The notes beneath the pieces were generated by a model that was not told the DNA's origin, made no database searches, and saw only the letters and a program-made list of their open reading frames with translations. A stretch of DNA of 64,000 nucleotides. It comes from Trichosphaerium sp. ATCC 40318 (lineage: Eukaryota; Protista; Tubulinea). Shown piece by piece: positions 1 to 47,256 of this stretch. The translations under genes were made by a program, and so were the position numbers. Location of the stretch: assembly GCA_038496445.1 (NCBI GenBank), contig JALMLS010000216.1, positions 496,001 through 560,000 of the forward strand. Direction: 5' to 3'. How positions within the stretch are numbered: the stretch's first letter is position 1; each line of letters opens with the position of its first letter.

Positions 1-3000
1 AGTTGTCAAACTTGCCACACCTTATAAATGTAAGCACTAGTGAAAAAAGTCTCACAAATGTACTTGGTATTGGGTCATCTAACGGAACTCTATACAAGAA
101 ACATGCCGGAGGAAATATATCCATAAGTTCTGCTGGACATGGCACTACAAGTGCATCAGCAACAAAGACAAAAATAAAGAAACATTTTTTTCGAAAAGTA
201 AAAAAATCTCTTAAAACATTTGTAATGAATGGCGGTTGTGTTGTTACCTGTTGAGGTTCCTATACCGAAACCCGATAGTATCGGACCACGATACTTCCTA
301 TCATAGAACATAATACCCATAAATATTCCAACAGCAAACATGAGACCCAAATCAAATAAGATGGCAGGCCAGAAACGGACTTGTTGAACAATAGAACGCT
401 CAAGGTTGACATATACTTGGAAAAAGAACCATGGTGTTTTCCTTTGAGAAACAAATTGTCGGTTATAAGTGTATGACAAAGCAAAAGGTATTTGTCGAAA
501 AGGTAAACAGTAAACGAATTCGATAGAATCGAAGAAAAATAAGGAACAAAAAGCAAGGTACTAACCTGACAAGATGAGGATACGATTCATAGCGCCAAAA
601 GAATACCCATACTATACAGCAACATGTAATTAATATGACAGCAACTGTAGCATGTGACCATGTAGGAAAGTCATGTTTAGAGGCAGTTACAGGATACCTA
701 AAGTATCAATCAATACACCAAAAAACAAAGAAAAATAAAAACATAAAAACATACCAGAAACCACCTACAGTGCCCAATTGAAAGATAAAACTTCCAAATA
801 GTACTGAACGTCGTTTAATAGATTTAGTTACAACTACTAGAATCAAAGAGAAAGGCCCACAAAGTACACCAGACACCTATTTCAATGAAAACATTTAATA
901 AAACGTCAAACTCGGTTTTTTTTTGTTTGATTTGAAAGGGTAAAACTTTATGACTTACGAATAACCCAAGGAATCTAGGTTTAGATTCTCTAGTTGATTG
1001 AAATAATAATCTTAGTACGAGTACAAACAGAGTTAACAGTGCCCAACCCAATATAATACCGGCAAATACTTTGACATTAACCTCAGAACTAACACTCATT
1101 CCAATAAGCCTATACAGCAAAGACGTTTTAGTATGACGCGTATTGATAGTATAATAATGACATACGCCATCGCTGAAACACTTAACATTGCTCCTGTTAG
1201 GGACCCATATGCGCTCTGAAAACACGTGAGTATTTTGTGATTTTTTGTGCGAGGATTTTTTTGTTTGTGTACCATTATTGTATCTTCATCAAAGTAGTAA
1301 GGATACAAGGTAGCCCAAGGTACTAAGAATGACATGACAAGGTATGTGGCGAAATTTATTTTACTTCCAACTTGATCGAACACAGGTGTGAAGCTCTCTT
1401 AATTAAGAATGTTTTAGTCTTCAAAAAGAAGCAATCCAAAAAAAAAAACAACATTGTTACCTGACGTAGAGTCTTCTTCTTCATCACTACTACTACTCGA
1501 TTCCTGATGTCGGCACCACTGATCATGAAGGTAGTCACTTTGCTTATTTTTACCACGATCAACATTGGATGTTGTAGTGGATACATTATCGCCAAATATA
1601 TCAGACTCCTCATCATCTTCGTCACCCAAAGTGTACTTTTCTTCTTTTTGTTCAACTTCGCCTCCAATGACTAGATAAAATACATAGTTAGTACCAACAC
1701 TACTTAAAAAATAGAGTGTTCATACCATCCAAGTAAAAATCAGCTGGGTTTATGAATGGTGGACACTTATACCCAAGGTTCTCAAAGTACTCGGCAACAT
1801 CATCAGTAGGCCCTCTTTGAAAAAAAAATTAGCGTAAGTTGACTACTTCAACAAATCGCAAAATTTTGAGAATTGTATCACCGTCGTTGACATACAAATA
1901 AACTGTTCGCCCTCCTTTTCCAAGCAATACAACGTCATCAAATAGATTAAATATCTCATAACGCGGTTGATGAATAACAGCAACGACAGTCATACCACCT
2001 CTACTTAAATCTTTCAAAACGCCAATAGTCTCCATAGCGCTTGTAGAATCAAGACCTAGATTAAATTTAGTACACAACAATCTTTTGTGAAACAGTATAG
2101 ACCAGTATGAGTCCAAGTACACTAACCTGATGTTGGTTCATCCAAGAATAAAATCATAGGATCAGATACAAGCTCCATACCGATATTAACACGTTTTCGT
2201 TGACCTCCACTAATCAATATTATTTTTTTTATTTTCAACGTGAGACACTTTACCTAATACCTCGCTTTACTACATCTCCGATGTATTGATATTTGAGTTC
2301 TTGTAAGTCTAGTATAGATAGAATATCTTCTACAACACCTTCTTTTTGCTCAGAGGATAGAGAAGCCGGTAATCTAGCTTCAGCAGAATAACCCAAAACT
2401 TCCTTTACAGTTAACTCTGTATTCATAACATCTTCCTCTACATTGACGTTAGATAATAGTGACAGCACTACACATACGTGGTACGAAACCAACAAGCTTC
2501 TTGTATCTTCTTACATCATCTTCTTTACCATTAATCTTTGTGGAGCCTAAGTACGACATTAAACCTGAAAAAACTGACTATAAAAGCCCTAAATGTTACC
2601 TGTTTTTACGCCATATGTAGCTCTACCAGATAGAGTATTCAAAAAAGTACTCTTACCAGATCCTGATGGTCCTATTGATGTTATAAGTAAATGAAGAAAG
2701 AGTACCTTTCTTTTTCTAACTAAAATTCAAGACCTTTTTGCTGAAGAACGTACCCATAATTGCAGTCAACCTACGTGGTTTGAACTCTCCAGTAACACCC
2801 TATCCAACTCATTCAATAACACACCTTATAGTACTATCAAACCTTCAGAACTTGTTTTCCAGTGCTTTTTAGACGCAAGCCAAGGTTATTGAACCTATTT
2901 ACCAAATCAACGTTTTTACTCAATTTGGGCATGGAATTTTTAATCAACGTTATGTTAACCGTACTTTAAATGAACTCCTTCGTGTCTGTTCAATCGAGGT

Positions 3001-3513: not shown

Positions 3514-5277
3514 ATGGAGCCGGTATCTAAGAGGCAGAAGCCATCTACAAAGCCTTCGGCAAGTAGAAAGCGTTCTAGAGCCACAGCACAAGTATCACTG
3601 GATGATGAAGGTTTGTTCGCCTACGCTTGTTAGTTGGTAACCTCGTACTAGTTGAAGCGTACAGAAAGCGTAAAAAGCTTGAGTATGAACGTAAAAAACA
3701 AGAACTGCTGAAACTGAATGATAGAGTTAATAAAAACGTTGAGAACCTTAAAAAGAGTACGTCATCGCATAATAATCGAAAGTGACGGTTGACACGAATC
3801 ATAGAATTAAAATATCTACCATACTTGCCTGATGAGCTTATATACGCCATAGTAATGTATTTACCGACCGTATTTAGTAGGTTGGGTATTTCTAGAATTT
3901 CTAAACGATGGTATGCCCTAAACCTCCTAAAACACCTTTCAATTAATTACCCTACGCGAAACCATTATATTTAATAGCTTTCTGCCATTTTAAATCGACA
4001 ACGAACCGTATCCGTTCAAAAATCCCTCAAACTTAAATACTAGGTACTCAATTTGCATGTCTTCAGTAACAGAAGTGAGCTTTAAACCATTTCAACCAGA
4101 ATGTGGTATTTACAAAACAGTGTACCAGACTCTATCCCATTGCAGGTACATTCTACGTTTACAATTTTTTTTTTCATGTGAAAACATTCCTCAGCTGTTT
4201 TGTTTTTTATTCCTCATGCTTTGACGCCTTATTTACTCTTTAAGGAATTTACGTATACTGGATTTATGTACACCTACAAACACACGTGTTTGCGTTTGTT
4301 TGAACCACTATATATCTTCTCTAACTCAGATAACGTCATTGACACTTCAAGATTTTACATACACTGCTAAGGGTCTTTCGTTACTGCTCTCAATGACCAA
4401 TTTGAAAGAACTAAGGTACACGCTTTTTGCAGTATTTTTAAGCGTTTCTAATTGGCTAATAGATTTAAATTACCTATAAAATATCGCGGAGGTGTCCAAG
4501 GATCAGTATCCAAACTCACAAACTTATGTTCTTTCAGGCAAGAAAAAAACAAAGTTTATTTTTGAGCCGTGATGTCCGTATTAACAATAATAGTGGCCCT
4601 GGTTGGTTGATAAAGAATATTACAGAATCACAATGTACAAATTTGACACGATTACATGTAATGACAGGTTACAGTGCGTATTTCAATGAAATGAGTTTTT
4701 TTATCAACTTTATCAATATAACTTGAACGAAAAGGTGGAACAAATAAGGATTTGTTTCTTGAAGCTTATAAACATTTGAGCAAAATGGTTAATCTCAAAA
4801 CACTTAAGTGTGTATCAGTACTACGTGAATCAGGATCAGTCTTCCAAGACATGTCAGCACTCACATCACTGAACCATTTGCGCATCAAAGGTAAATATAC
4901 TTGTTCTTTTTTTTCTCAAATTTCTTTTGTACTAATACGGATTGCATACAGGAGTTCTTAATGAATCGCTTGCAAACTTCAACATGTTGTCAGCCTTAGT
5001 TAATTTGAAGAAACTGGACTTGAGCTTTCTTACCTTCCCGAAAACCGAAATTTCGAAGCTTTCACAATTCACTTCTTTGGAAGAACTTAACCTATGCAAT
5101 CATAGCGAGCTTTCAGATGACATTTACACGACACTTATGGAACTACCTCGGTTATCTTTAATAAATTTATATGCTACAGGAGTAACTGAAAAAGGTACAA
5201 AACAATTTTTATCTGACAGACCGAATTGTACTGTTTATAGAATGAGCGAACAACAAACTACTTTATCAAATTTATGA
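3514..5277 (+). CDS. F-box and leucine-rich-repeat protein, multi-exon
   Basis: Basic N-terminus MEPVSKRQKP, F-box LPYLPDELIYAIVMYL..ISRISKRW (~3815-3910), LRRs such as LVNLKKLDLS and FTSLEELNL. Confidence 0.8.
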
Positions 5278-5482: not shown

Positions 5483-8400
5483 ATGGATGACGGTACAGAA
5501 GAAGAGAGCTCGACTTTGGTGCTAAACGAAGACTCTTCGCTATCAGAATCTTCACAAACTAGCTCTAGCTCTGCCTCTAGCTCAGGCTTCTCAGAGACCT
5601 CAGAAGATCCCAGCGGAAGTAGTGAAGAGTCCAGTGAAGAACAAAACGATGTTTCACCGCAGATACCACAAAAAGGCACCAAAACAGGTAAAAACGGTAG
5701 TAAGTACATTGGTGAGCTAAAGAACGGTAAATGCCACGGAAGGGGCACCAAAACATGGCCAGACGGAAGAAAATACGTAGGAGAATTTAAAAACAATAAG
5801 GCCAACGGCAGAGGAACTAAAACGTGGCCAAACGGAAAAAAATATGTCGGCGATTTTGTTAACGGCAAATGTACCGGAAAAGGCATCAAAACGTACCCAA
5901 AGGGTAGAAAATATGAAGGAGACTTTGTAGATGATAAGAAAGTCGGAAAAGGAATATTCACATGGAAGAACGGAACAACATACGAAGGAGATTTTGCCGA
6001 TAATGAATTTAACGGAAAAGGAAAAAAAACATGGCGTGATGGGTCTTTCTATGAAGGAGACTTTGTTAATGCCAAGTTTGAAGGTAAAGGTGTTTATCAG
6101 TTTAAGGATGGTGGAAGATATACAGGTGATTTTAAGAGGAGTAAGTTTGATGGTAGAGGTGAAATGGTTTACGCTGATGGATCAACACGTATTGGTAGTT
6201 TCAGAGATGATAAGTTCCTTGGTAGAGGAGCGAGGATTCTTCGTACAAGATCTGCTTATAGGCAACTACTACTAGGCCCTGTTATTGGTAAAGGAGATGA
6301 CGCAATTGATAGAGAAACAGGTGAAATAATAGGTGAAACTGTACCTTTAATGTCACGAAGAAGTGATCAAATAGTTCCTCCTATATTGGTTGTTTCTGAT
6401 AATCTAGCAAAGTTTAGAGAACTTAATAATGATTTATCAAGAGAGTTTGATGTTACTCTGATACCTTTTAAAAGATTAACAAAAGGGTTATCAGGATTAC
6501 GGTTTACGCATACATTAGTTATCTTAGAAATATGGACAGCTGATTGGATTATCGGATTTATGAAGAGACTACAATATAAAACATCAGCTTATTTTGATCT
6601 TATTATAGCACATGATGCGAGGTCACCTTTATCTTTACTTCAAGGTATGTAACAACACATGTCACAAAAAATAGAAAAAAGAAAGAAAAAAGAAGGAAAA
6701 ACAAATTTGAGACATTTTGGGTTTGATACTTGACAAGTTCATCAATTTATGACCTTTATTTCATATGAAATGATAACAGTTTTACTGATGATTTGTTTAG
6801 TTACATTTTATGCCAGAAGTATTCGTAGAGCACGAGTTATATGTCTTAACAAAGATAAAGACAAATCTCGTAAACGTTTTATTGATACTTTCTGTGTTGC
6901 AATTGATCCCTTAAGCAATGACGAACGACCTATTCCTGTAAAGGCAAATCAAGTTCATCAACGTCCTGAATTGGCAATACGCTATAAAGCAAAAATGATT
7001 GTTATTGGACATGGTGGTTCTGGTATGCGTCTTTGTTTAATTTCTTGTCAGCTTTCGGTATACCAATGTTTGTTACAGGTAAAACAACACTAGTTAGAAC
7101 CCTATCTAGTACCAGAAATGCGGAGCAGCTTGAATCAACGATAGGCTTCGAATCGACAAACCTCAAGTACGTTTTTTTAATGTTTTGAAACTTGTCACTT
7201 TTGACAAATTCAACCAGACTTGGTGGTGTATTATTTACAGTTTTGGATTTTGCTGGACAGATGGAATACAAGGCCGTTCATAAATACTTTTTCTCACAAC
7301 ATCTTTCAATCTATCTCATTGTGGTGCGTTCATCACTAAAAAATATATATGATACTTCGCTTACTATCTCTAGCTTGATATGACACTCACTTTGAAGCAA
7401 CTTAAAAAACAATTAAAGCACTGGTGTAAGACCCTTAATTCCCATTTAAAAGGATTAAGTACTTCGTATTCTGTTATTGTATTTGGATCAAAACTAGACG
7501 TTAGTGGAAGTGATTGGGAAAAAACTAAACCAGGATTAAGGGAAGTATTAAGAGAGTATAAGGTTGAAGCATCAATATCCTTTGGCTCAGCAAGTGGTAT
7601 GCGCATCTCCATTTCTTACCGACTACTGTACAGATGTCCACGTGAATACGATCTTTTTATGTCTTTCTCGTATTTTTCAATACCACGTGAACATACGCTT
7701 TCAATCTAATCATTTGAGTTTAGTTGGCAATACAGAACATTTAAAGTCATTGCTAAGCCAAAACGCAGAGATATTAAAACAGAAGTATCCGATAGTACCC
7801 TTCTTATTTGTACATATTAAAAGACATGTTAAAAGGTTGAGAGCGGATGCTGACTCTCTTTCTGGTAATTTAATGACAGTGTACGACATTCATAACCACT
7901 ATTGTGAAGCATATATCTAACTTTGTTAGGTCTGAACTTCTTCAAACAGAATTACCAAGTATCCCTTGTTCTCCTGTTGAGTTTGTAGCGTGCTTGGACT
8001 ACTTGGATTCAATAGGATCAATTACTTTTGATAGTGTACGTTGTTTACTATTCGAAGAAAAATCAAAAGCCAGGCCTACCTTTTGCTAATGTTTTCTTCT
8101 TTTTTAGAAATCACGTGCAATCTGTTTATACCCAAATATATTATCACAAGTTATGAGTGCATTTATAGCTCCTACAAACCACTTAAAAAGATTATTTAAA
8201 GGAGAATCAAGAACGCAAGTATCTTCCGTAGTTACTGATGAAGAAGCTAATTTTCGAATCAAAAAAATGTTTCCATCTTGCTCTGATAATGATGTAACAG
8301 TTGTTATGAGATTCCTAGAGCGTATGAATTTCTGTATGCGGTTAACGAAACGCGAAGAGGTAAGCTGGGACTTCATTTTTTTTCCTTTTTTCGTTCCATT

Positions 8401-11400
8401 TGTTTATTTTACTGTAGGTTCACTATGGTTACTCTGGATACATTATACTATCTATGCGCCCAAAGGCTGATATGCTATACTTCCCACCTCTTAAAGAAAA
8501 TGACCATAAAGTGACATTGGTTGCAATGAATGAAAAGAAACAAAACCAGCCTGTTATGGTATTAAGAAAGTTCCAAAAACGATGGAAGCTACTTCGACAT
8601 AAAAGCACTTCAGAGGATACCAATTATGACGTTGTTTCGGATGTTGATGAAGAGCATAAAGAAGGTTCACCGGTACGTTAATAACAAGAAATTATAGTAC
8701 ACAGTGGTCACTGTATATCGATACCTTACAGCCTTTTAGAGACTCCCAGACGGCCATTCACCAATACCTTCAACTCCTCGCTTTTTGTCTTGTGAAGTTA
8801 AATCACAAGAGCTCAGTTTAGAGCGATTTACAGAGTTACAGCGCCAGTTACGTTGTACGTCAATGTAATAATAGTTTTAAAGAAATTACCCCTTGCTTAT
8901 GTCTGTCTTGATAGGCTATCATAGTGTCAGTCTTAAAGTATTCTCTAATCTTGTATTCTTGACTGATTTTTATGGTAATCATATTGCGCTGTACCATGAA
9001 CATGAGGAAGAGAAACTAAGAGTTGTTGTTCGTGGTGTAGTACCACATCTCTGGAGAGAGTGCTTGGAACCTCACCTTTCTAGACTTAAACCAAAGATTA
9101 TACCTCAATGCCCGGCGGCTGTACAGAGTGGTTACTTTATTAAACCAGCAAATAAGTTACTAGGGTACAAGTGCAAGATAACTGGTACGGTTTTTGTCTA
9201 ACTTTTTCATTCATGTCAACATTGGGTTTTTTTGACTTCATGTAGGGCAAGTTGTTAAGCACCATCACTTAAAAGAAGGGTATCCTATTATACCTAATAA
9301 ATACTCTTTGTGGAGTAGTATTTCAGGTGTTGCTTTTTATAAGCAAGGAAAGTGGGTTGATAAAGGAAACGGACTAAGAATGACTACGCTCTTAAAAAAT
9401 GAGAAAACTAAAGTATGACTTAGGGTTTTTGTCTTTTTGTTAGTTGAAGCTTATGCTTAGTTTACTATGTATTTTTCCTTATTTTCATTTTAGGAGCGTC
9501 GTAAAGAGTACCTTCGAGCTCGTAATATGTTCTATAACTTTATGGGTGTTGATAAAAACTCATTTTTTAACCTGACAAAGATTGTATTTTTTGATAATCC
9601 AAGACTTGAATCAAACTTTCAAACATTCTACGATTCTTTAGTTGTTGAGAATATTATCAATGAAAAATCTGGCGGTACCTCTCACTCGATTTAATGTTTA
9701 CACATTCAGTATCTCACCTAACACAACTCTATAGAACATGCAGTTTATACTGATAAAAACAAAGAGAGGTACATAAATACAACCCTTTTTTGTGTTTTTT
9801 CTTAACACCACTTTTCAGGACTATGAGCTTTCTTCAGAATTATGTTATGCGTGTTTCAGGGAACGAGGGTATTAATCTAATCGCTGGGTTTCATGGTACA
9901 TCTGAAGTAAGCTTCCTGGATCCATAGTAAAGTAAAGCTAACTTTATTTCCTTTTCCAACAGGAAACAAGTTTTAAAATTGCAACAAATAACTTTAAGGA
10001 GCCTCACGAAATAGAAGCTGAGAGAAAAGAAAGAAGGAAGAAGAGAGAGTTAAATCCAGGTCATATTTTGATAGCTTGGAATGCGTTTATTAACAACAAT
10101 CGTAGATTTTGATCCTGACATAGTTGAAAAGAATAAACCATTAGATCCAGGTTATTTTGGTACAGTGGATTACTTCGTTTGATGAACAAATACCTCAGTC
10201 TCTAATTATTGGAAAATAGGTAAAGGGATATACTTTACACAGTATCCAAAATATGGTACGTACTTTTTTGTGTGCACGTGTTAGTGCTAACTTGTTTTGC
10301 TTTGCTTTTTAGGTTCAATGTATTCAAATATAAGAGAGGATACTGGAGAACAGTGTATGCTTATTTCTTGGGTGATGTTAGGAAAGACATATCCAGTGAC
10401 CGAGAACCCTATAAAAGATAGAGATAATCTTGTAGGAAAGGGTTGCAAGGTAAGCCATTGAGGATTTGTTTCTTGCGTTTGGCATCTTTCTAACATCTCT
10501 TTAAATAAGCCCGGATACAACTCTCATTATGCTATTGTGAAATCAAGCGTTACAAAATCTGTATACGTTCCTTGTACATATGAAGACACACCAGAAGCTG
10601 ATGAGATAGTTGTCTTCTCTAAGAACCAGGTTCTAAACTATTTGTTGTCGTGCTTTTCCCTTTAAACTAACTTTATTTTTCCAGATTCTACCTCGATACC
10701 TTGTTTATTATAAAACAGGCGGTTCTGATGATAATGAATATAATGAGTTCTTGTTGGAATACAGAGACGCAAGATCAATTGTACTATGGGTAGATGATAA
10801 ATTATCAGATGTAAACAAACAGCTTGTTAAGATGCTTGAGAGACGTGAAAGAAAAACAAAGGTAAAAAAGAAATGTTGCTTCCTTTTCTTTTCTTCGAAA
10901 ATCATTCGCTCGAAAACTAATCTGCTGTTCATCTACATTGAGTTAGCACTAATTTCATGCGCTGGTCAAGCGTTGACGTCATTTTAAAGTTGATCGCACC
11001 CCACGCTTAGTATTGAAGGCTTACTATTTTTTTGTTTGTAGGTTTTACAGATGACTTCTTCTAAAGAGTTGTTCACGTGGCTGGATACTTATAAAGGATA
11101 TTGCGGTTCTAAAATTAAAATAATAACGAATACTTATCGTCCAGAAGATGGAGAAGCATTTGCAGCACAGAAGTTACTTGTTGAGTTGAGATCAAAGAGA
11201 AAATGGAAAAGTATACCAGTTGTAGTTTTTTGTGGTACGCACCTTTGTTATCTCATTTTTCTTGTTTTTTTCTTTCAATTGTATTCTCTAGTTTTCTTCA
11301 AAAAGTAACCGTGGGTTTTTTAAATCTATTATACCATTGTGTTGGTACCAAGCATACATCCACAGCTAAGTTAGCTTGTCAACAAATGGTTTTTTGATCT

Positions 11401-11707
11401 TTGTTCTTCTGCTTTCTGTTATATACACGAGCTCCCACGTGTACTGAAATTATAGTGTATTATTAACCACGCGCTTTTGAAAATACACTATGTATTAAAT
11501 ACGCATCTCACATGTATTACACGTGCTCTTTTTCGACCAAGACCTTTTGGAAACCCTTTTAGGAAAAAAACTTGCTTTCGCAATTTCATGCCACTAATAT
11601 TCTGTTTTTGATGTGTAGGTAATACAGAACCTGTTAAGTACCTTTCTAAAAAATTCAAACAAACTTTTGTAACAAACAATCCAGGAGATGTTATGAAAAG
11701 AGTATAA
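5483..11707 (+). CDS. Multidomain Roco protein: MORN repeats - receiver-like - Roc GTPase - COR - PARP-like ADP-ribosyltransferase - receiver-like
   Basis: Eight MORN repeats; GHGGSG|KTT P-loop across intron 7023-7078; DFAGQMEY; FGSKLD; COR-like LDYLDSIGSITF and ICLYPNILSQVM; FHGTS (9892), PGYFG|KGIYFT, ADEIVVF..QILPRYLVYY; VLWVDD (10781). Last exon 11619-11707 joins in phase (FCG|NTEPV). Confidence 0.85.
5696..6230 (+). repeat. Eight tandem 23-aa (69-bp) MORN repeats
   Basis: YxGxFxxxKxxGxGxxxWxDG units read directly in ORF 5483..6652. Confidence 0.95.
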
Positions 11708-12325: not shown

Positions 12326-12937
12326 CTAACAATCACACTTACTTTCTTCTTGTCCTTGTTTTCTATTAGTTCTCTTTTCCTCGACTTTCACTATTGGCCT
12401 TGTTGTTGCATCTTGAATTTCTAATTGAAGAGCAGCTGTCTCAGCAAGATATTGAAAAACTTTATCGACTGTATTTTCCTCTTTTGAAGAAGTCTCGAAA
12501 TACTTCATATCTCCATTCTGCTTACACCAAGTCTTTGCCTTTTGTTCACTTACAACCCTCTCTTCTATCATATCCTTCTTATTACCAACAACAATAAATG
12601 TCACCGTACTATCCTTCTCAGCAACACCATCAATCCGAAAAAACGTTTGTTTCCACGTGTTCAAATGTTCAAATGATGATTCCGAAGTTACATCATAAAC
12701 AAGTATACAACAATGCGATCCTCTATAAAAAGCTGTAGATAACGCCTGAAAGCGCTCTTGACCCGCTGTATCCCACATTTGAAGGAAAACATTACGGTTA
12801 CCGATATTTACTTGTTTCTTCATAAAATCAGCGCCAATCGTCGGTTTATGGTTATTATTGAATCCCCCGTTGACATATTGGTCTAATAGGCTTGTTTTAC
12901 CGACGCCTGAGTCTCCTATGAGTATTATTTTTATCAT
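12326..12937 (-). CDS. Rab7-like small GTPase, uninterrupted CDS
   Basis: GDSGVGKTS, TIGADF, WDTAGQERF, FYRGSHCCILVYDVT, GNKKD, ETSSK, and a C-terminal CxC prenylation motif (KCDC). Confidence 0.93.
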   Translation of the reverse strand: MIKIILIGDSGVGKTSLLDQYVNGGFNNNHKPTIGADFMKKQVNIGNRNVFLQMWDTAGQERFQALSTAFYRGSHCCILVYDVTSESSFEHLNTWKQTFFRIDGVAEKDSTVTFIVVGNKKDMIEERVVSEQKAKTWCKQNGDMKYFETSSKEENTVDKVFQYLAETAALQLEIQDATTRPIVKVEEKRTNRKQGQEESKCDC

Positions 12938-28154: not shown

Positions 28155-31100
28155 ATGGAAGTCAAACCTTATCCAAATTCTCAGTTGTTCTTTACAGAAA
28201 TCCGCAGTACATCAACGGGTGTAGTACACAACAGTGTAAGAAAGGTTGTATGTGGTGTGCGGAGTTTATACCTATCGAGGTTCTGTACATTGTTCTTATA
28301 AGTGTTATAACGCTTATTGGTGTTGCATTAACTTCATATCGGTGCGAAAGACTTATTGGAGGATCGTTCGGACGTTTTGGATCTAAAACTCCTGTAGGGC
28401 AAAATCAGAACGAGAGACGCCATTGACGTTACATCAAGTAACAATGACACTCGCTAGAGTGAGTAACCTCAAAAAAGAAAAAAACAATAACGTTTTCATG
28501 CAATCGTTACTTATTTATCATCTTAATAGCTCTCCACACCTTATTGGGTATTCGACATTAAAAATAAAGGCATGTTATGGGCAAACGACGCGGCAATTAC
28601 CCTTTGGGCAAAAAACGATCTTAATCATCTCCTCAAACAAGACTTCAAGACAGACATGTCAGATGCCACAAAAGCAAGATTACTTTTTTACGAAGAAGAA
28701 TTTGCGAAAAACAAGGTTCGTAGATAGATCTACAACATAACGCGCAATTGCTTCCAAAAGGGTTTGCTGAAATACAGTTCAATCGCCGGATTGATTTTTT
28801 CTCCGCTGAAGTGTAGGCCGAAAAAAGGCGTTGGGTTTTTTTTATAACACCTTAACGTGCTTACTATTACATTAGTCCGTAGAGGAGAACTGGAATTTTT
28901 ATCCGAACGGTGTTCCTACACGTGCTACTTGTATATGCCGAGGTATGTATCACGTGACTGCGTAGAGTGGTGATCCTACACAGATTTGATTTGATTTGGA
29001 ATTAATTGGATTGTAGGTATACAACATAACGGTGTGACTGTAATGCTTGTTGAGGCTATACCAGAAGCAACAAATACAATCAAAGCAGAAGAAGTTCGTA
29101 TTGTTGAAAGCATGAGGCATCTTAATAGTTGTGTATGCTTGTTTGATGAGAAAGGAGAAGAGATACTGTATCAGAACCCAATTTCCTTCGAGGTAACAAA
29201 GCATGGATCTTTTTTTTTTCTTTTTACCAAGCTCCCTATTTACGCTCTATAGACTTACGGCAATACAACGAGTCTGAGTGACCTCCTAGTATCTGATGAA
29301 GACATCTTCGGGTTCTTACAAACAGAATCAATCTACCAAGGAGAGTGTCGTATGAATACAAAGGTATTTTTCTCTCGTTTGGTCTTTTTTGTTGTGGTTC
29401 CTTTTTGTGAATTGTTTTTTGTAATTTCCTTTTTTGTAGAAAGGACAAAAGTGGTTTCTCATAAAAGTTCAGAAACTCAATGATCCTATTACTGGTAAAG
29501 ATGTTATATTGATGCATAGTACTTCTATTGAAATGCAAAAAAAAGCGGAGTCTTCTGTACAATACACAAAAGATTTCCTTGCATACATGAGCCATGAGAT
29601 ACGGTACACAACAACAAAAACGATTGAAAGAGAAAAAAAACCGTTGAGTCTACGGAGTTTCACAAAAGATTTTTGTGAGCGCAAGCCTAACTCCCTCCTC
29701 GCTATTAGGACACCTCTCAATGCTGTTATTGGTTCTGCGGAGATTATGGTTTCTGCTACAGCGTCAGATAAACTCCATGATGAGTTAGATGAAGCTCTTA
29801 CAACTATAAGATCAAGCGCACTTTCTCTTCTCAATGTTGTAAATGGTATATTGGATATTTCAAAGATAGCTCAGGGTGGGTTTGACCTTGTCCCTACGCA
29901 ATTTAAAATAACAGATTGTGTTCAAAATACTTATAATACATGTAAACTTATCGGAAAAGCACAACAAGTCACTTTAAACAAAGTTGTTTGTGAAGAACTA
30001 GAAACACAAGAATTATATCAAGACAAAGGAAAGCTTGAACAAGTTCTCATCAACTTGATCAGTAACGCTATAAGATTTACTCCAGAAGGAGGTACGTTTA
30101 AAGAGATCCATTTTACAACAAAATATTTTCTTTTAGGTTCAGCTGCACGTGATCTAACATGTGATTTTATTAAGGTGTCGTTACTTTAAAAGTGTCTCAA
30201 GATGATAAGGATATGTGTACATTTTCAGTGAGTGACACAGGATGTGGCGTTCCGGAGGACAAAATTAATAGTTTATTTGTTCCTTACTTTCAAGTTGGTC
30301 AACAATCAGGTACGCAACTTGTGACTCCCTTTGTTTTCTTTCTATTTTTTGACAACATTCTCGTTCTTTTCTTGTTTTTTGTTTGGGGCAAGTGTATCTT
30401 AAAATACTTTATATGTGTTTAAACAAATATCAACCTCATCAAGTTATTAATTAATCATGTATTTTATAGGTGGAACAGGTCTTGGTTTAAACATTTCAGA
30501 AAAAATAGTTTCATTGATGGGAGGCGAATTAAAGGTTGATAGTACTGTTGGTAAAGGATCAACATTTTACTTTTCTATACCATCGGGTCCGGATACAGGT
30601 ATAAAGAAACGCTTATCACCAAGAGAGATGGTAGATCTTGAAAAAAACCAGTAAGTAACCGTTTCCTTAGTTGAACTATAAACGTGTACTGATGATTTTT
30701 CTTCCTTAAGGAACACAACTCTTTTGATTAAAAAACCGAAAGAGAAAGCTTCGAAAATGAGTATCCTTGTTGTTGACGATAACTCTGTGAACAGATTGGT
30801 CTGTGTAGCATTACTTAAAACACTTGGATATCATGTGCGTGACCGAAATATGATTTAAAAACAAAGCATTCTTGTAATTGTGATAATTGTTACTTACTTT
30901 TCTTCGCTTCATAGAATACCTATACTGCTGTTGACGGTCAAAATGCTATTGATTTGTGGAAGGAAAAGCACCATGATGTTATATTAATGGATTACGAGAT
31001 GCCAGTAAAAAATGGTTTGGCCGCAACAAAAGGTATTAATTCTGTTTTTCTTGCCTTAAAACGAGGAGCTCTTCCAAACGTTCAACCTTTTTCATTCACT

Positions 31101-45045: not shown

Positions 45046-46121
45046 ATGACTTCAATTGGCCCTATCTTTATCAAGAACAAGAACAGCGGTTTGGTTATGG
45101 ACTGCAAATACTTTAGCGATGCTGACTGCACTCCCGTCATTCAATACGGACGCAAAGGTGAATCTTATGATAACCAGCTCTATACCGCTGAGAAAGTCGG
45201 TGGTACCTTCGAGAAACCTATTTATAAGATCATCTGTCACTTCTCAGGAAAGGTACATTGTACTTTTTTTAGAAACCTGTTGATTTACCTAACTACCTCA
45301 CTAGGTATTGGATATTTCTGGTGCTAGTTGCGAAAACGGTGCCCCTCTTATTGAATATCACTACCACAATGGTGAAAACCAACAGTTTTACATGGAAGCC
45401 CAAGGAGAACGTATGTGTCCATTCTTTGTTTTTTGTTCTGTGAATGTTTTTGTCTTTTTAGCTTGGAAGTCACGTGACCAAGTTTTTCGTTTCTTGTGGT
45501 TTTTTATTGTTAACTTCTCTTCTAGATACCGTATTTGTCAATGTACGATCAGGTAAAGCTTTGAGCGTACCTGGATCATCAGATGCTCCAGAGACTCAAA
45601 TCGTTCAAGAGGAAAGAACGAACGCCGATAACCAACTGTGGGAAATTGTTTACCCAGAAGGTAAAGGATTAACTATTTGTGTTCAAGACGCTGCCATCAA
45701 GGTTGAGTACATCGTACCTCCTGATCTCAAGGACAACACTATTTATCGCGAGTCTGTCACCTTCACCAACAAGCTCCCTATCCCACTCAATGATTGCAAA
45801 GCCATCATCGATGTTGATGAGAACTCTCCTTTCCATAGCGAGAGCATGTCTACCGGTGGCGTTAGCATGGATCTCGATGCCATCACCTTCGACTTTGGTT
45901 CTATCCCAGCTAACGGGTACGTCACACAACCACTTCAAGAACTTGGATTAACGTCTGCGTTTAGATCGAAGACCAAGTACTGGACATTCAGCTTCCCTAA
46001 ACTCGATAAGGATATGCCTGACACGAAGTTCCAAGGTATCTTCCAACTCGCTCCATTCTACAAGATCGATTACTCGAAATGGGGTGGAACTTCAAAGAAA
46101 CTCCCAGTAACTGGAAACTAA
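45046..46121 (+). CDS. Ricin-B (beta-trefoil) lectin with a C-terminal beta-sandwich-like domain; no signal peptide
   Basis: Three subdomains: NSGLVMD..NQLY, SGKVLDI..NQQF, SGKALSV..NQLW. Three exons; C-ending codon bias. Confidence 0.88.
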
Positions 46122-46476
46122 TCTTCTGCGAGTTGCAACCCCAGCACCTTTAGCAAGCTTGTATCTTGAGCTTACAATAAATTACCTTCATTACTGTTTC
46201 ATAGTTAAATTTCATTGTAATCGAACATTGTTTGAGTGCAGAAGGTGAGAGCCCTTGCACGGTAACACTTCACGAATGTAGTTTATAATTATAACACGTG
46301 TCTCAGTTTGTGGTATTATGAAAATATCCTTGTACAAGTACTCAAATACTCACCAGAAAGCTATAATTATTGGTATTCAGTAAAAACAACAGAGGTACTT
46401 AAAGAAATACTTTGACGTTTTATCAAAAACCTGTGGTTGAAATTCTCCATCTGGAATTCAAAACAGCGCCGTAGTA

Positions 46477-47256
46477 ATGTCAGTTAAACGCCATTCATGT
46501 ATTGAACAACGAATTGCTATTTATAGTTTTCCTTGTGAGATAATAACGTACATTCTATGTTATTTAGATAAAGAACAACGTATTAACACTACAACGGTAT
46601 CTCACCTATTCAATAGCATCATAAGACAAAACGTTGGTTTTGTAAGATTATTCCTACACGACCCATTTGACGTTTATCGTCTCAAGGACAGCCCGCTACT
46701 CCGAAACACTCCAATTACTTGTCGATTATTAAATTTGTCCGCAGATCATTTGGCTTGCCTTTCAGGTGTTCACACTATTAACCTACAATGGTCAACAATA
46801 ACTGATGAAGGTATACTTGCATTGGTAAATGGGGGAGCACAACCGATTCACACCATAAACTTACAAGGAACGAAGATAACAGATATCTCACTTCAGGCTC
46901 TCAAAGACGTTCACAAGATTGACCTTTATGGTTGTAAAAACATAACCGTTAAAGGCATAAGCGCTCTCAAAGATGTACACCATATAACACTTAGATGTCC
47001 TCCTGATGAATGGCTTAAACATCTTGCTAACGTTCATACTGTTTGTATTCTTAAAGGCAGTGAAGAAATGACAGATAACGGTATACGACATTTGACAGGA
47101 GTTAAAAGATTGTACCTTACAGAATGCGTTAACATAACTAACTCAAGTTTGGAGAGCTTGATAGACCTTGAGTACGTCTATCTCAAAGATTGTCCAAATA
47201 TTTCATACCATTGTGTAAAAAACATTGAATCTCTCATCAAAATGGAAATCCGGTAA
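46477..47256 (+). CDS. Intronless F-box + LRR protein
   Basis: FPCEIITYILCYL F-box; repeats LSGVHTINL, LKDVHKIDLYGC, LTGVKRLYLTEC. Confidence 0.85.
   Translation: MSVKRHSCIEQRIAIYSFPCEIITYILCYLDKEQRINTTTVSHLFNSIIRQNVGFVRLFLHDPFDVYRLKDSPLLRNTPITCRLLNLSADHLACLSGVHTINLQWSTITDEGILALVNGGAQPIHTINLQGTKITDISLQALKDVHKIDLYGCKNITVKGISALKDVHHITLRCPPDEWLKHLANVHTVCILKGSEEMTDNGIRHLTGVKRLYLTECVNITNSSLESLIDLEYVYLKDCPNISYHCVKNIESLIKMEIR

Follow-up and report, generated by a model that had tools for sequence, protein, structure and literature searches.

The window analysed here, a stretch of 64,000 nucleotides in all, contains at 5483..11707 (+) a predicted gene of 23 exons, whose single open frame encodes 1442 amino acids (aa) and proved free of stops in a frame and GT..AG check. 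All 22 introns are of the GT..AG type, measure 46-384 nt, and agree in phase at every junction, and an exon-by-exon comparison found the model colinear with intron-free relatives. The encoded domains follow the order MORN, linker segment, Roc, divergent COR, PARP-type ADP-ribosyltransferase (ART) and C-terminal pseudo-receiver. The features are as follows.

5483..5690 (+): Ser/Glu-rich low-complexity N-terminal tail of ~70 aa, read from the sequence
5705..6256 (+): MORN array, seven canonical 23-aa units and one degenerate unit (Pfam PF02493, E=3e-43)
6371..6961 (+): beta/alpha segment that links MORN to Roc across intron 1 and to the eye looks like a degenerate small GTPase
6645..6800 (+): intron 1, 156 nt, phase 1, predicted; joins MORN to the rest
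6989..7780 (+): Roc GTPase, exons 2-6, with G1-G5 motifs; the best Pfam match of exon 4 is Roc (E=0.004)
7780..9184 (+): divergent COR, recognised with the relatives' profile (COR-A in exons 6-9, COR-B in exons 10-11, CP motif at the end)
9494..10712 (+): PARP-type ART, exons 13-21, with His1138 (9892), Tyr1197 (10231) and Glu1282 (10603)
10775..11704 (+): pseudo-receiver, exons 21-23; a family profile matches each of exons 21, 22 and 23
Exons 1-6 (+), predicted: 5483-6644, 6801-7022, 7079-7166, 7218-7323, 7374-7596, 7724-7880
Exons 7-12 (+), predicted: 7930-8035, 8108-8359, 8418-8672, 8740-8854, 8915-9184, 9246-9412
Exons 13-18 (+), predicted, the 3' introns seen in RNA contigs: 9494-9674, 9735-9768, 9819-9906, 9963-10059, 10106-10159, 10220-10255
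Exons 19-23 (+), 3' introns seen in RNA contigs: 10313-10449, 10510-10629, 10685-10861, 11042-11234, 11619-11707

An F-box/LRR gene (3789-5277, +) lies upstream, with 205 nt between its end and the Roco start codon, and a Rab7-like GTPase gene (12326-12937, -) lies directly downstream. The latter is intron-free, so intron-free coding stretches of 600 nt do occur in this genome. No paralogue of the Roco-ART gene was found within the 64-kb window.

A first-pass annotation of this DNA had proposed that 5483-11707 is one spliced gene, and the open 23-exon frame agrees with that proposal; RNA supports the splicing of the 3' introns, and the MORN join is predicted. Two contigs from one public run (X1, RNA-like by inference) are 99% or more identical to the gene. 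They splice out introns 10160-10219, 10256-10312, 10450-10509, 10630-10684 and 11235-11618, imply a sixth (10862-11041), and join the exons of the ART Tyr and Glu to the receiver, with a mutual overlap of only 12 nt. Their cover is confined to the 3' third, with none 5' of 10104 and thus none for exons 1-16. The full-length join accordingly stands on the open frame, not on RNA, and profile and homology searches were run with single exons of the gene or with natural relatives, exon-wise Pfam searches being too weak for most exons. The motifs quoted earlier (GHGGSGKT, DFAGQ, SKLD, FHGTS, GIYF and DEIVV) were all found where they had been placed. A pseudogene is ruled out by the open frame together with the spliced RNA, and the full architecture, MORN included, very probably resides in one protein.

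Exon 22 retrieved 13 proteins from among 1.84 billion representatives. The best match (P0001), from the amoebozoan Trichosphaerium sp. ATCC 40318, is a fragment with ART and receiver that scores above the Pfam PARP cut-off. A single 879-aa ORF (L005) runs from the Roc G4 motif, i.e. the C-terminal half of Roc, through COR to ART; it is colinear with exons 5-21, and the K|V site that intron 21 occupies here is interrupted there too, by an intron of the same phase. P0015, whose contig is intron-free and has 60% GC, combines Roc (48 bits), PARP (48 bits) and receiver in one ORF. At L007:116-781, this ORF reaches 113 codons upstream of the called start, and Roc is preceded by a degenerate domain resembling RhoA (E=5e-4). 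In L004, COR-B-like sequence is linked to ART over what looks like a frameshift within an A run. P0016 (on a contig of GCA_041443065.1) has COR-like sequence and ART, and a gene called as Roc lies immediately upstream of it. Long insertions separate COR from ART in P0016, which carries Trp at the position of the ART His and is possibly inactive. Because L005, P0015, L004 and P0016 all carry linked parts, the Roc-COR-ART-receiver core is judged to be a real conserved fusion, present across several unrelated samples. Judged by these relatives, the host is probably an amoeba. A chance neighbourhood of Roc and PARP is ruled out, as the two are fused in relatives. Three further candidates were discarded: L001 and L002 from the metagenome scan are spurious (glycosyltransferase loci), and P0005 is a chance repeat match.

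The first exon encodes tandem 23-aa beta-hairpin units, as expected of MORN repeats. A model of this exon has pLDDT values mostly >90 and matches Trypanosoma brucei MORN1 (TbMORN1) with Z 20.9 and rmsd 2.5 over 187 aligned residues. Eight repeats had been counted before; seven are canonical units, but the eighth is degenerate. The units are 33-71% identical at the DNA level and form no 69-bp array, which rules out a recent tandem expansion. The confinement of the MORN block to a single 1.16-kb exon had also been taken as a hint of domain shuffling. While that exon is indeed intron-free, a longest exon of >=1162 nt has P=0.023 under uniform intron placement, and exon 1 also encodes ~70 aa before and ~130 aa after the MORN block. 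Since its length is only mildly unusual and its limits do not match those of the block, exon 1 constitutes weak evidence for shuffling. Better evidence of N-terminal swapping comes from P0015, which shows no MORN match and has the degenerate Rho-like domain in its place; this suggests that the N-termini of Roco-ART relatives may be exchangeable. MORN repeats are known as protein-interaction and oligomerisation modules (PMC7725318), and no record of them as pathogen sensors was found in the literature searched.

The Roc domain has its motifs in place. In G1, GHGGS (7007) is joined across a phase-1 intron to KTT (7081), giving GHGGS|GKT with Lys463, and it is followed by G2 (STIG, 7135), G3 (DFAGQ, 7246), G4 (SKLD, 7488) and a G5-like SAS. 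G1 to G3 are canonical. All PDB matches of exon 4 are to the LRRK2 Roc, though at E>=0.11, in line with the weak Pfam match of the same exon. The Roc of P0015 scores above the Pfam cut-off, and LRRK2, ranked first, and C. tepidum Roco both rank above Rabs, so that the domain is closer to Roc than to Rab or Ras. The Roc domain reported earlier is thereby upheld.

The region directly C-terminal of Roc is a COR, with moderate support. Exons 8, 11 and 9 match the relatives' COR profile (E of 5e-15, 2e-13 and 4e-4), and the alignment of that profile with two bacterial proteins annotated as COR spans 193 columns, with E=3e-4 and the motifs in order. The top Pfam match is COR-A for three relatives and COR-B for a fourth, each time below cut-off; COR profiles gave no match in the PDB, and a search for Roc-COR homologues in the 483-1538 aa class found nothing. 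The description of this region as COR-like can thus be retained at that moderate level. Roc, COR and output domain lie on one polypeptide in the intron-free ORFs of relatives, and here in the open spliced frame. By these sequence characters the gene belongs to the Roco family, its COR being moderately supported.

The ART has the motifs FHGTS (9889, His codon 9892), GIYF (10225) and DEIVV (10600, Glu codon 10603), and exons 15-20 are 55-90% identical to L005. In relatives, the domain reaches 38-55 bits against Pfam PARP (cut-off 26.7). An ART profile built from four relatives and searched against the PDB found PARP4 first (E=1.5e-8), followed by PARP2, ZAP, PARP12 and PARP1, and Atlas feature matches for the ART were PARP clusters, the best at 0.92. 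Profile alignment to PARP4 and PARP2, combined with exon-by-exon mapping, puts the His, Tyr and Glu in PARP register, and these residues with their surrounding motifs are invariant in the four relatives and the present gene. The gene's ART is thus classed as a PARP-type member of the H-Y-E group, as first read, with PARP4 as the nearest solved ART.

An H-Y-E triad need not mean polymer formation. At the acceptor site (PARP1 numbering, by PARP4 register), M890 and K903 each correspond to Tyr here, and Y986 to Ala. Changes at this site limit PARP4 to mono-ADP-ribosylation, and K903A alone makes PARP1 a mono-enzyme (PMC10711553). As the chain-extension residues are replaced here as in PARP4, we infer a mono-ART, and the domain is probably active as such. 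A poly-ADP-ribose polymerase of the PARP1/2 or tankyrase type is ruled out by sequence, the M890, K903 and Y986 positions all being replaced. Exon 16 encodes a highly charged Lys/Arg/Glu insertion (10022-10058) between the His and Tyr motifs. Relatives are ~15-20 aa shorter at this point, which falls within or close to the donor loop; an influence of the insertion on the choice of targets is possible. Viral contigs were scanned with a stretch of the ART, with its profile and with the Rab next to the gene, and nothing useful emerged.

The C-terminal domain keeps the WVDD acidic pocket of a receiver. Its strand 3, placed by predicted secondary structure in exon 22, ends in Thr-Asn where the phospho-Asp belongs, which makes it a pseudo-receiver; Thr/Ser-Asn occupies this position in nearly all of 14 aligned relatives. 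A relative's C-terminal model (pLDDT 75-94) has the (beta/alpha)5 receiver fold, with Z 12-13.5 and rmsd ~2.2-2.4 against receiver domains. When P0015 was modelled by AlphaFold with 10 sequences, the receiver was the sole confident domain; Roc-COR was not folded confidently, and the ART region had pLDDT mostly <50. Receiver-like domains had been announced in the plural. The C-terminal one stands, but the segment between MORN and Roc (6371..6961) is not matched by the family receiver profile (E=0.43), and Pfam and PDB searches with it were blank as well. The structure model of this segment is of low confidence, its pairwise comparison with the Rho-like N-terminal domain of P0015 gave E=0.11, and a comparison with a six-sequence Ras profile over 500 shuffles gave no signal, the positive control having failed as well.

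The Asp-less receiver family also occurs on P0013 (Mastigamoeba TRAPPC10, aa 1390-1525) and P0011 (a DENN protein, aa 598-750), and this attachment to other proteins indicates a mobile module. It has no Pfam match and may represent an unnamed amoebal domain family. Two-component parts are present in the organism, as a HisKA histidine-kinase domain lies at 29440-30186 (+; E=2e-13).

The same ART subfamily was found at the N-terminus of two proteins of Chlamydiae metagenome-assembled genomes (MAGs), L008 (1-5649) and L009 (5845-10044). These ARTs are 29-40% identical to those of the relatives and possess H-Y-E. The ART is followed by LRR in L008, and by ankyrin, DUF294 nucleotidyltransferase-like and TPR domains in L009. 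While the ART motifs are alike, the chlamydial ART is N-terminal and without Roc-COR. Environmental chlamydiae often live in amoebae, and the subfamily may possibly be shared between host and symbiont.

The order of repeat, Roc, COR, enzyme and accessory domain, with G1-G3 intact, is that of known Roco proteins (LRRK2, LRRK1, DAPK1, MFHAS1, Dictyostelium GbpC/Roco1-11 and C. tepidum Roco). However, MORN stands here for LRR or ankyrin, ART for the kinase and a pseudo-receiver for WD40, and the COR is divergent. Bacterial LRR-AP-GTPase-COR proteins, with at least 24 effector types, were proposed as counter-invader systems (Kaur et al. 2021, PMC8195603). They share the repeat-Roc-COR-effector layout and have swappable effectors, including TIR, with several paralogues per genome, whereas the present gene is eukaryotic and spliced. 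Neither COR+ART nor MORN strings occur in the available part of the supplements of PMC8195603, and PARP is absent from the AP-GTPase source file as available. Brown-algal LRR-ROCO proteins are candidate immune receptors (PMC3341825, PMC11378527) that belong to an expanded family with a variable repeat N-terminus, some with C-terminal enzymes (peptidase, DUF900). Each LRR is its own shuffled exon in these genes, whereas the whole MORN array lies in one exon here; neither PARP nor MORN is mentioned in PMC11378527. Among ARTs, PARP4 (vault PARP) and H-Y-E mono-ARTs (PMC10711553) resemble the present one in triad and altered acceptor site. No BRCT, WGR, VIT or vWA domain was found here, and the likeness to PARP4 is a profile match that need not reflect orthology.

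Effector swapping on Roc-COR is therefore already known from bacteria (PMC8195603) and brown algae (PMC11378527). What appears new is a Roco with an ART output, of which no printed version was found in the literature searched, a body that excludes most subscription journals; the closest papers that mention both Roc-COR and PARP/ART do not link the domains. This accords with the earlier remark that the architecture was not recognised from characterised proteins. A sensor-NTPase-effector layout like that of innate immune receptors had been noted too. The layout is analogous, but the NTPase is a Ras-like Roc GTPase rather than NACHT or NB-ARC, so no STAND core is present, and the same layout is known from bacterial and algal Rocos. 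The likeness to NLR/STAND receptors is thus one of layout only.

In established Roco biochemistry, as for C. tepidum Roco, Roc-COR switches between a dimer that is nucleotide-free or GDP-bound and a monomer bound to GTP, and the enzyme next to it is under its control (PMC6337361). We propose, as the best explanation on the whole but a tentative one, that the gene belongs to an amoeba-type Roco subfamily in which a Roc-gated mono-ART replaces the kinase and acts most likely in defence. The MORN array would bind a protein ligand or scaffold and thereby localise or cluster the protein. Roc-COR would alternate between dimer and monomer as in C. tepidum Roco and gate the adjacent ART, with the non-phosphorylatable receiver serving as a brake or docking site, and the ART would move single ADP-ribose units from NAD+ onto itself or onto protein targets. 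By analogy with that cycle, we lean towards an ART gated by Roc. Most likely, the protein would serve cell-autonomous defence or would signal in conflicts with bacteria that the cell has ingested, with endosymbionts or with giant viruses.

Defence as the main role is slightly favoured, just short of an even chance, because the N-termini vary and the ART subfamily occurs in two Chlamydiae MAGs; LRRK2-like trafficking is nearly as likely. The counter-invader proposals for bacterial LRR-Roc-COR proteins and the candidate immune Rocos of brown algae speak for defence by analogy. The same enzyme and switch might instead serve housekeeping signalling in the manner of LRRK2 or the Dictyostelium Rocos, in which MORN would recruit the protein to membranes or cytoskeleton and the ART would modify host trafficking proteins, e.g. 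small GTPases, by ADP-ribosylation in place of phosphorylation. This is a serious if less probable reading. It is modelled on the membrane recruitment and Rab modification of LRRK2 (PMC6337361), and MORN is a scaffold module. The core and the intron position are kept across distant organisms, which fits stable signalling equally well, and the one available run (X1) contains the transcript and bears no sign of a challenge experiment. Moreover, the same receiver family sits on the trafficking proteins TRAPPC10 and DENN. On the other hand, conflict genes more typically show such features as variable N-termini and an ART subfamily in common with proteins of chlamydiae. A bolder version of the defence proposal, unlikely as it stands and drawn by analogy, would see here an amoebal class of innate-immune receptors, in which the sensors at the N-terminus (MORN, pseudo-Rho) can be exchanged and a Roc-COR GTP switch triggers a mono-ART. 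If true, an NLR-like system would have been built from LRRK2-type parts, its ART subfamily being one that proteins of chlamydial endosymbionts also carry.

All these readings that include MORN depend on intron 1. Its donor is strong (7.6 bits, equalled by one of 225 exonic GT sites), no weaker than the true donors, and precedes the exon-1 stop (6650-6652) by 5 nt, in the phase required by exon 2. That a top-scoring donor should fall there argues against the MORN exon being a separate gene, or a short isoform, that ends at 6650-6652 with the Roc-COR-ART-receiver gene starting downstream. Nor is there an AATAAA in the gap between the exon-1 stop and exon 2, and 6801-7022 has the score of coding sequence when read in the Roc frame. 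In favour of separation, RNA cover is absent across the join, the acceptor at 6801 is weak (1.7 bits) and a stronger one at 6817 would break the frame if joined to the 6645 donor, P0015 lacks MORN, and intron 1, the only clearly A-rich intron, is in this respect like the 3' end of the gene. On this evidence a separate MORN gene is improbable, and the predicted splice from exon 1 to exon 2 is very probably correct. An alternative exon 2, with the 6817 acceptor and an extra intron at 6870-6943, scored slightly worse. Use of the 6645 donor with the 6817 acceptor would yield a short MORN-only product ending at 6912-6914 (window 6645-6914), possibly a truncated isoform.

Least probable is a decoupled switch or a weak or vestigial ART, leaving a scaffold or an ART that merely hydrolyses NAD+ or modifies itself: the divergent COR, SKLD as G4, the loss of the ART His in one relative (P0016) and the degenerate receiver would fit, but the canonical G1-G3 and the invariance of H, Y, E and their motifs stand against it.

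Even for LRRK2, the way in which Roc-COR governs its output domain is a matter of debate. A Roco that naturally carries an enzyme using NAD+ would offer a simple, kinase-independent read-out of the coupling between Roc-COR and output. If the preferred defence role is true, the protein would be a rare example, among free-living amoebae, of a dedicated receptor-effector, and ADP-ribosylation would be linked to amoebal conflicts with chlamydiae and giant viruses.

Elsewhere in the window, a ricin-type beta-trefoil lectin domain (45462-46118, +; E=3e-7) and a second F-box/LRR gene (46441-47253, +) were observed.
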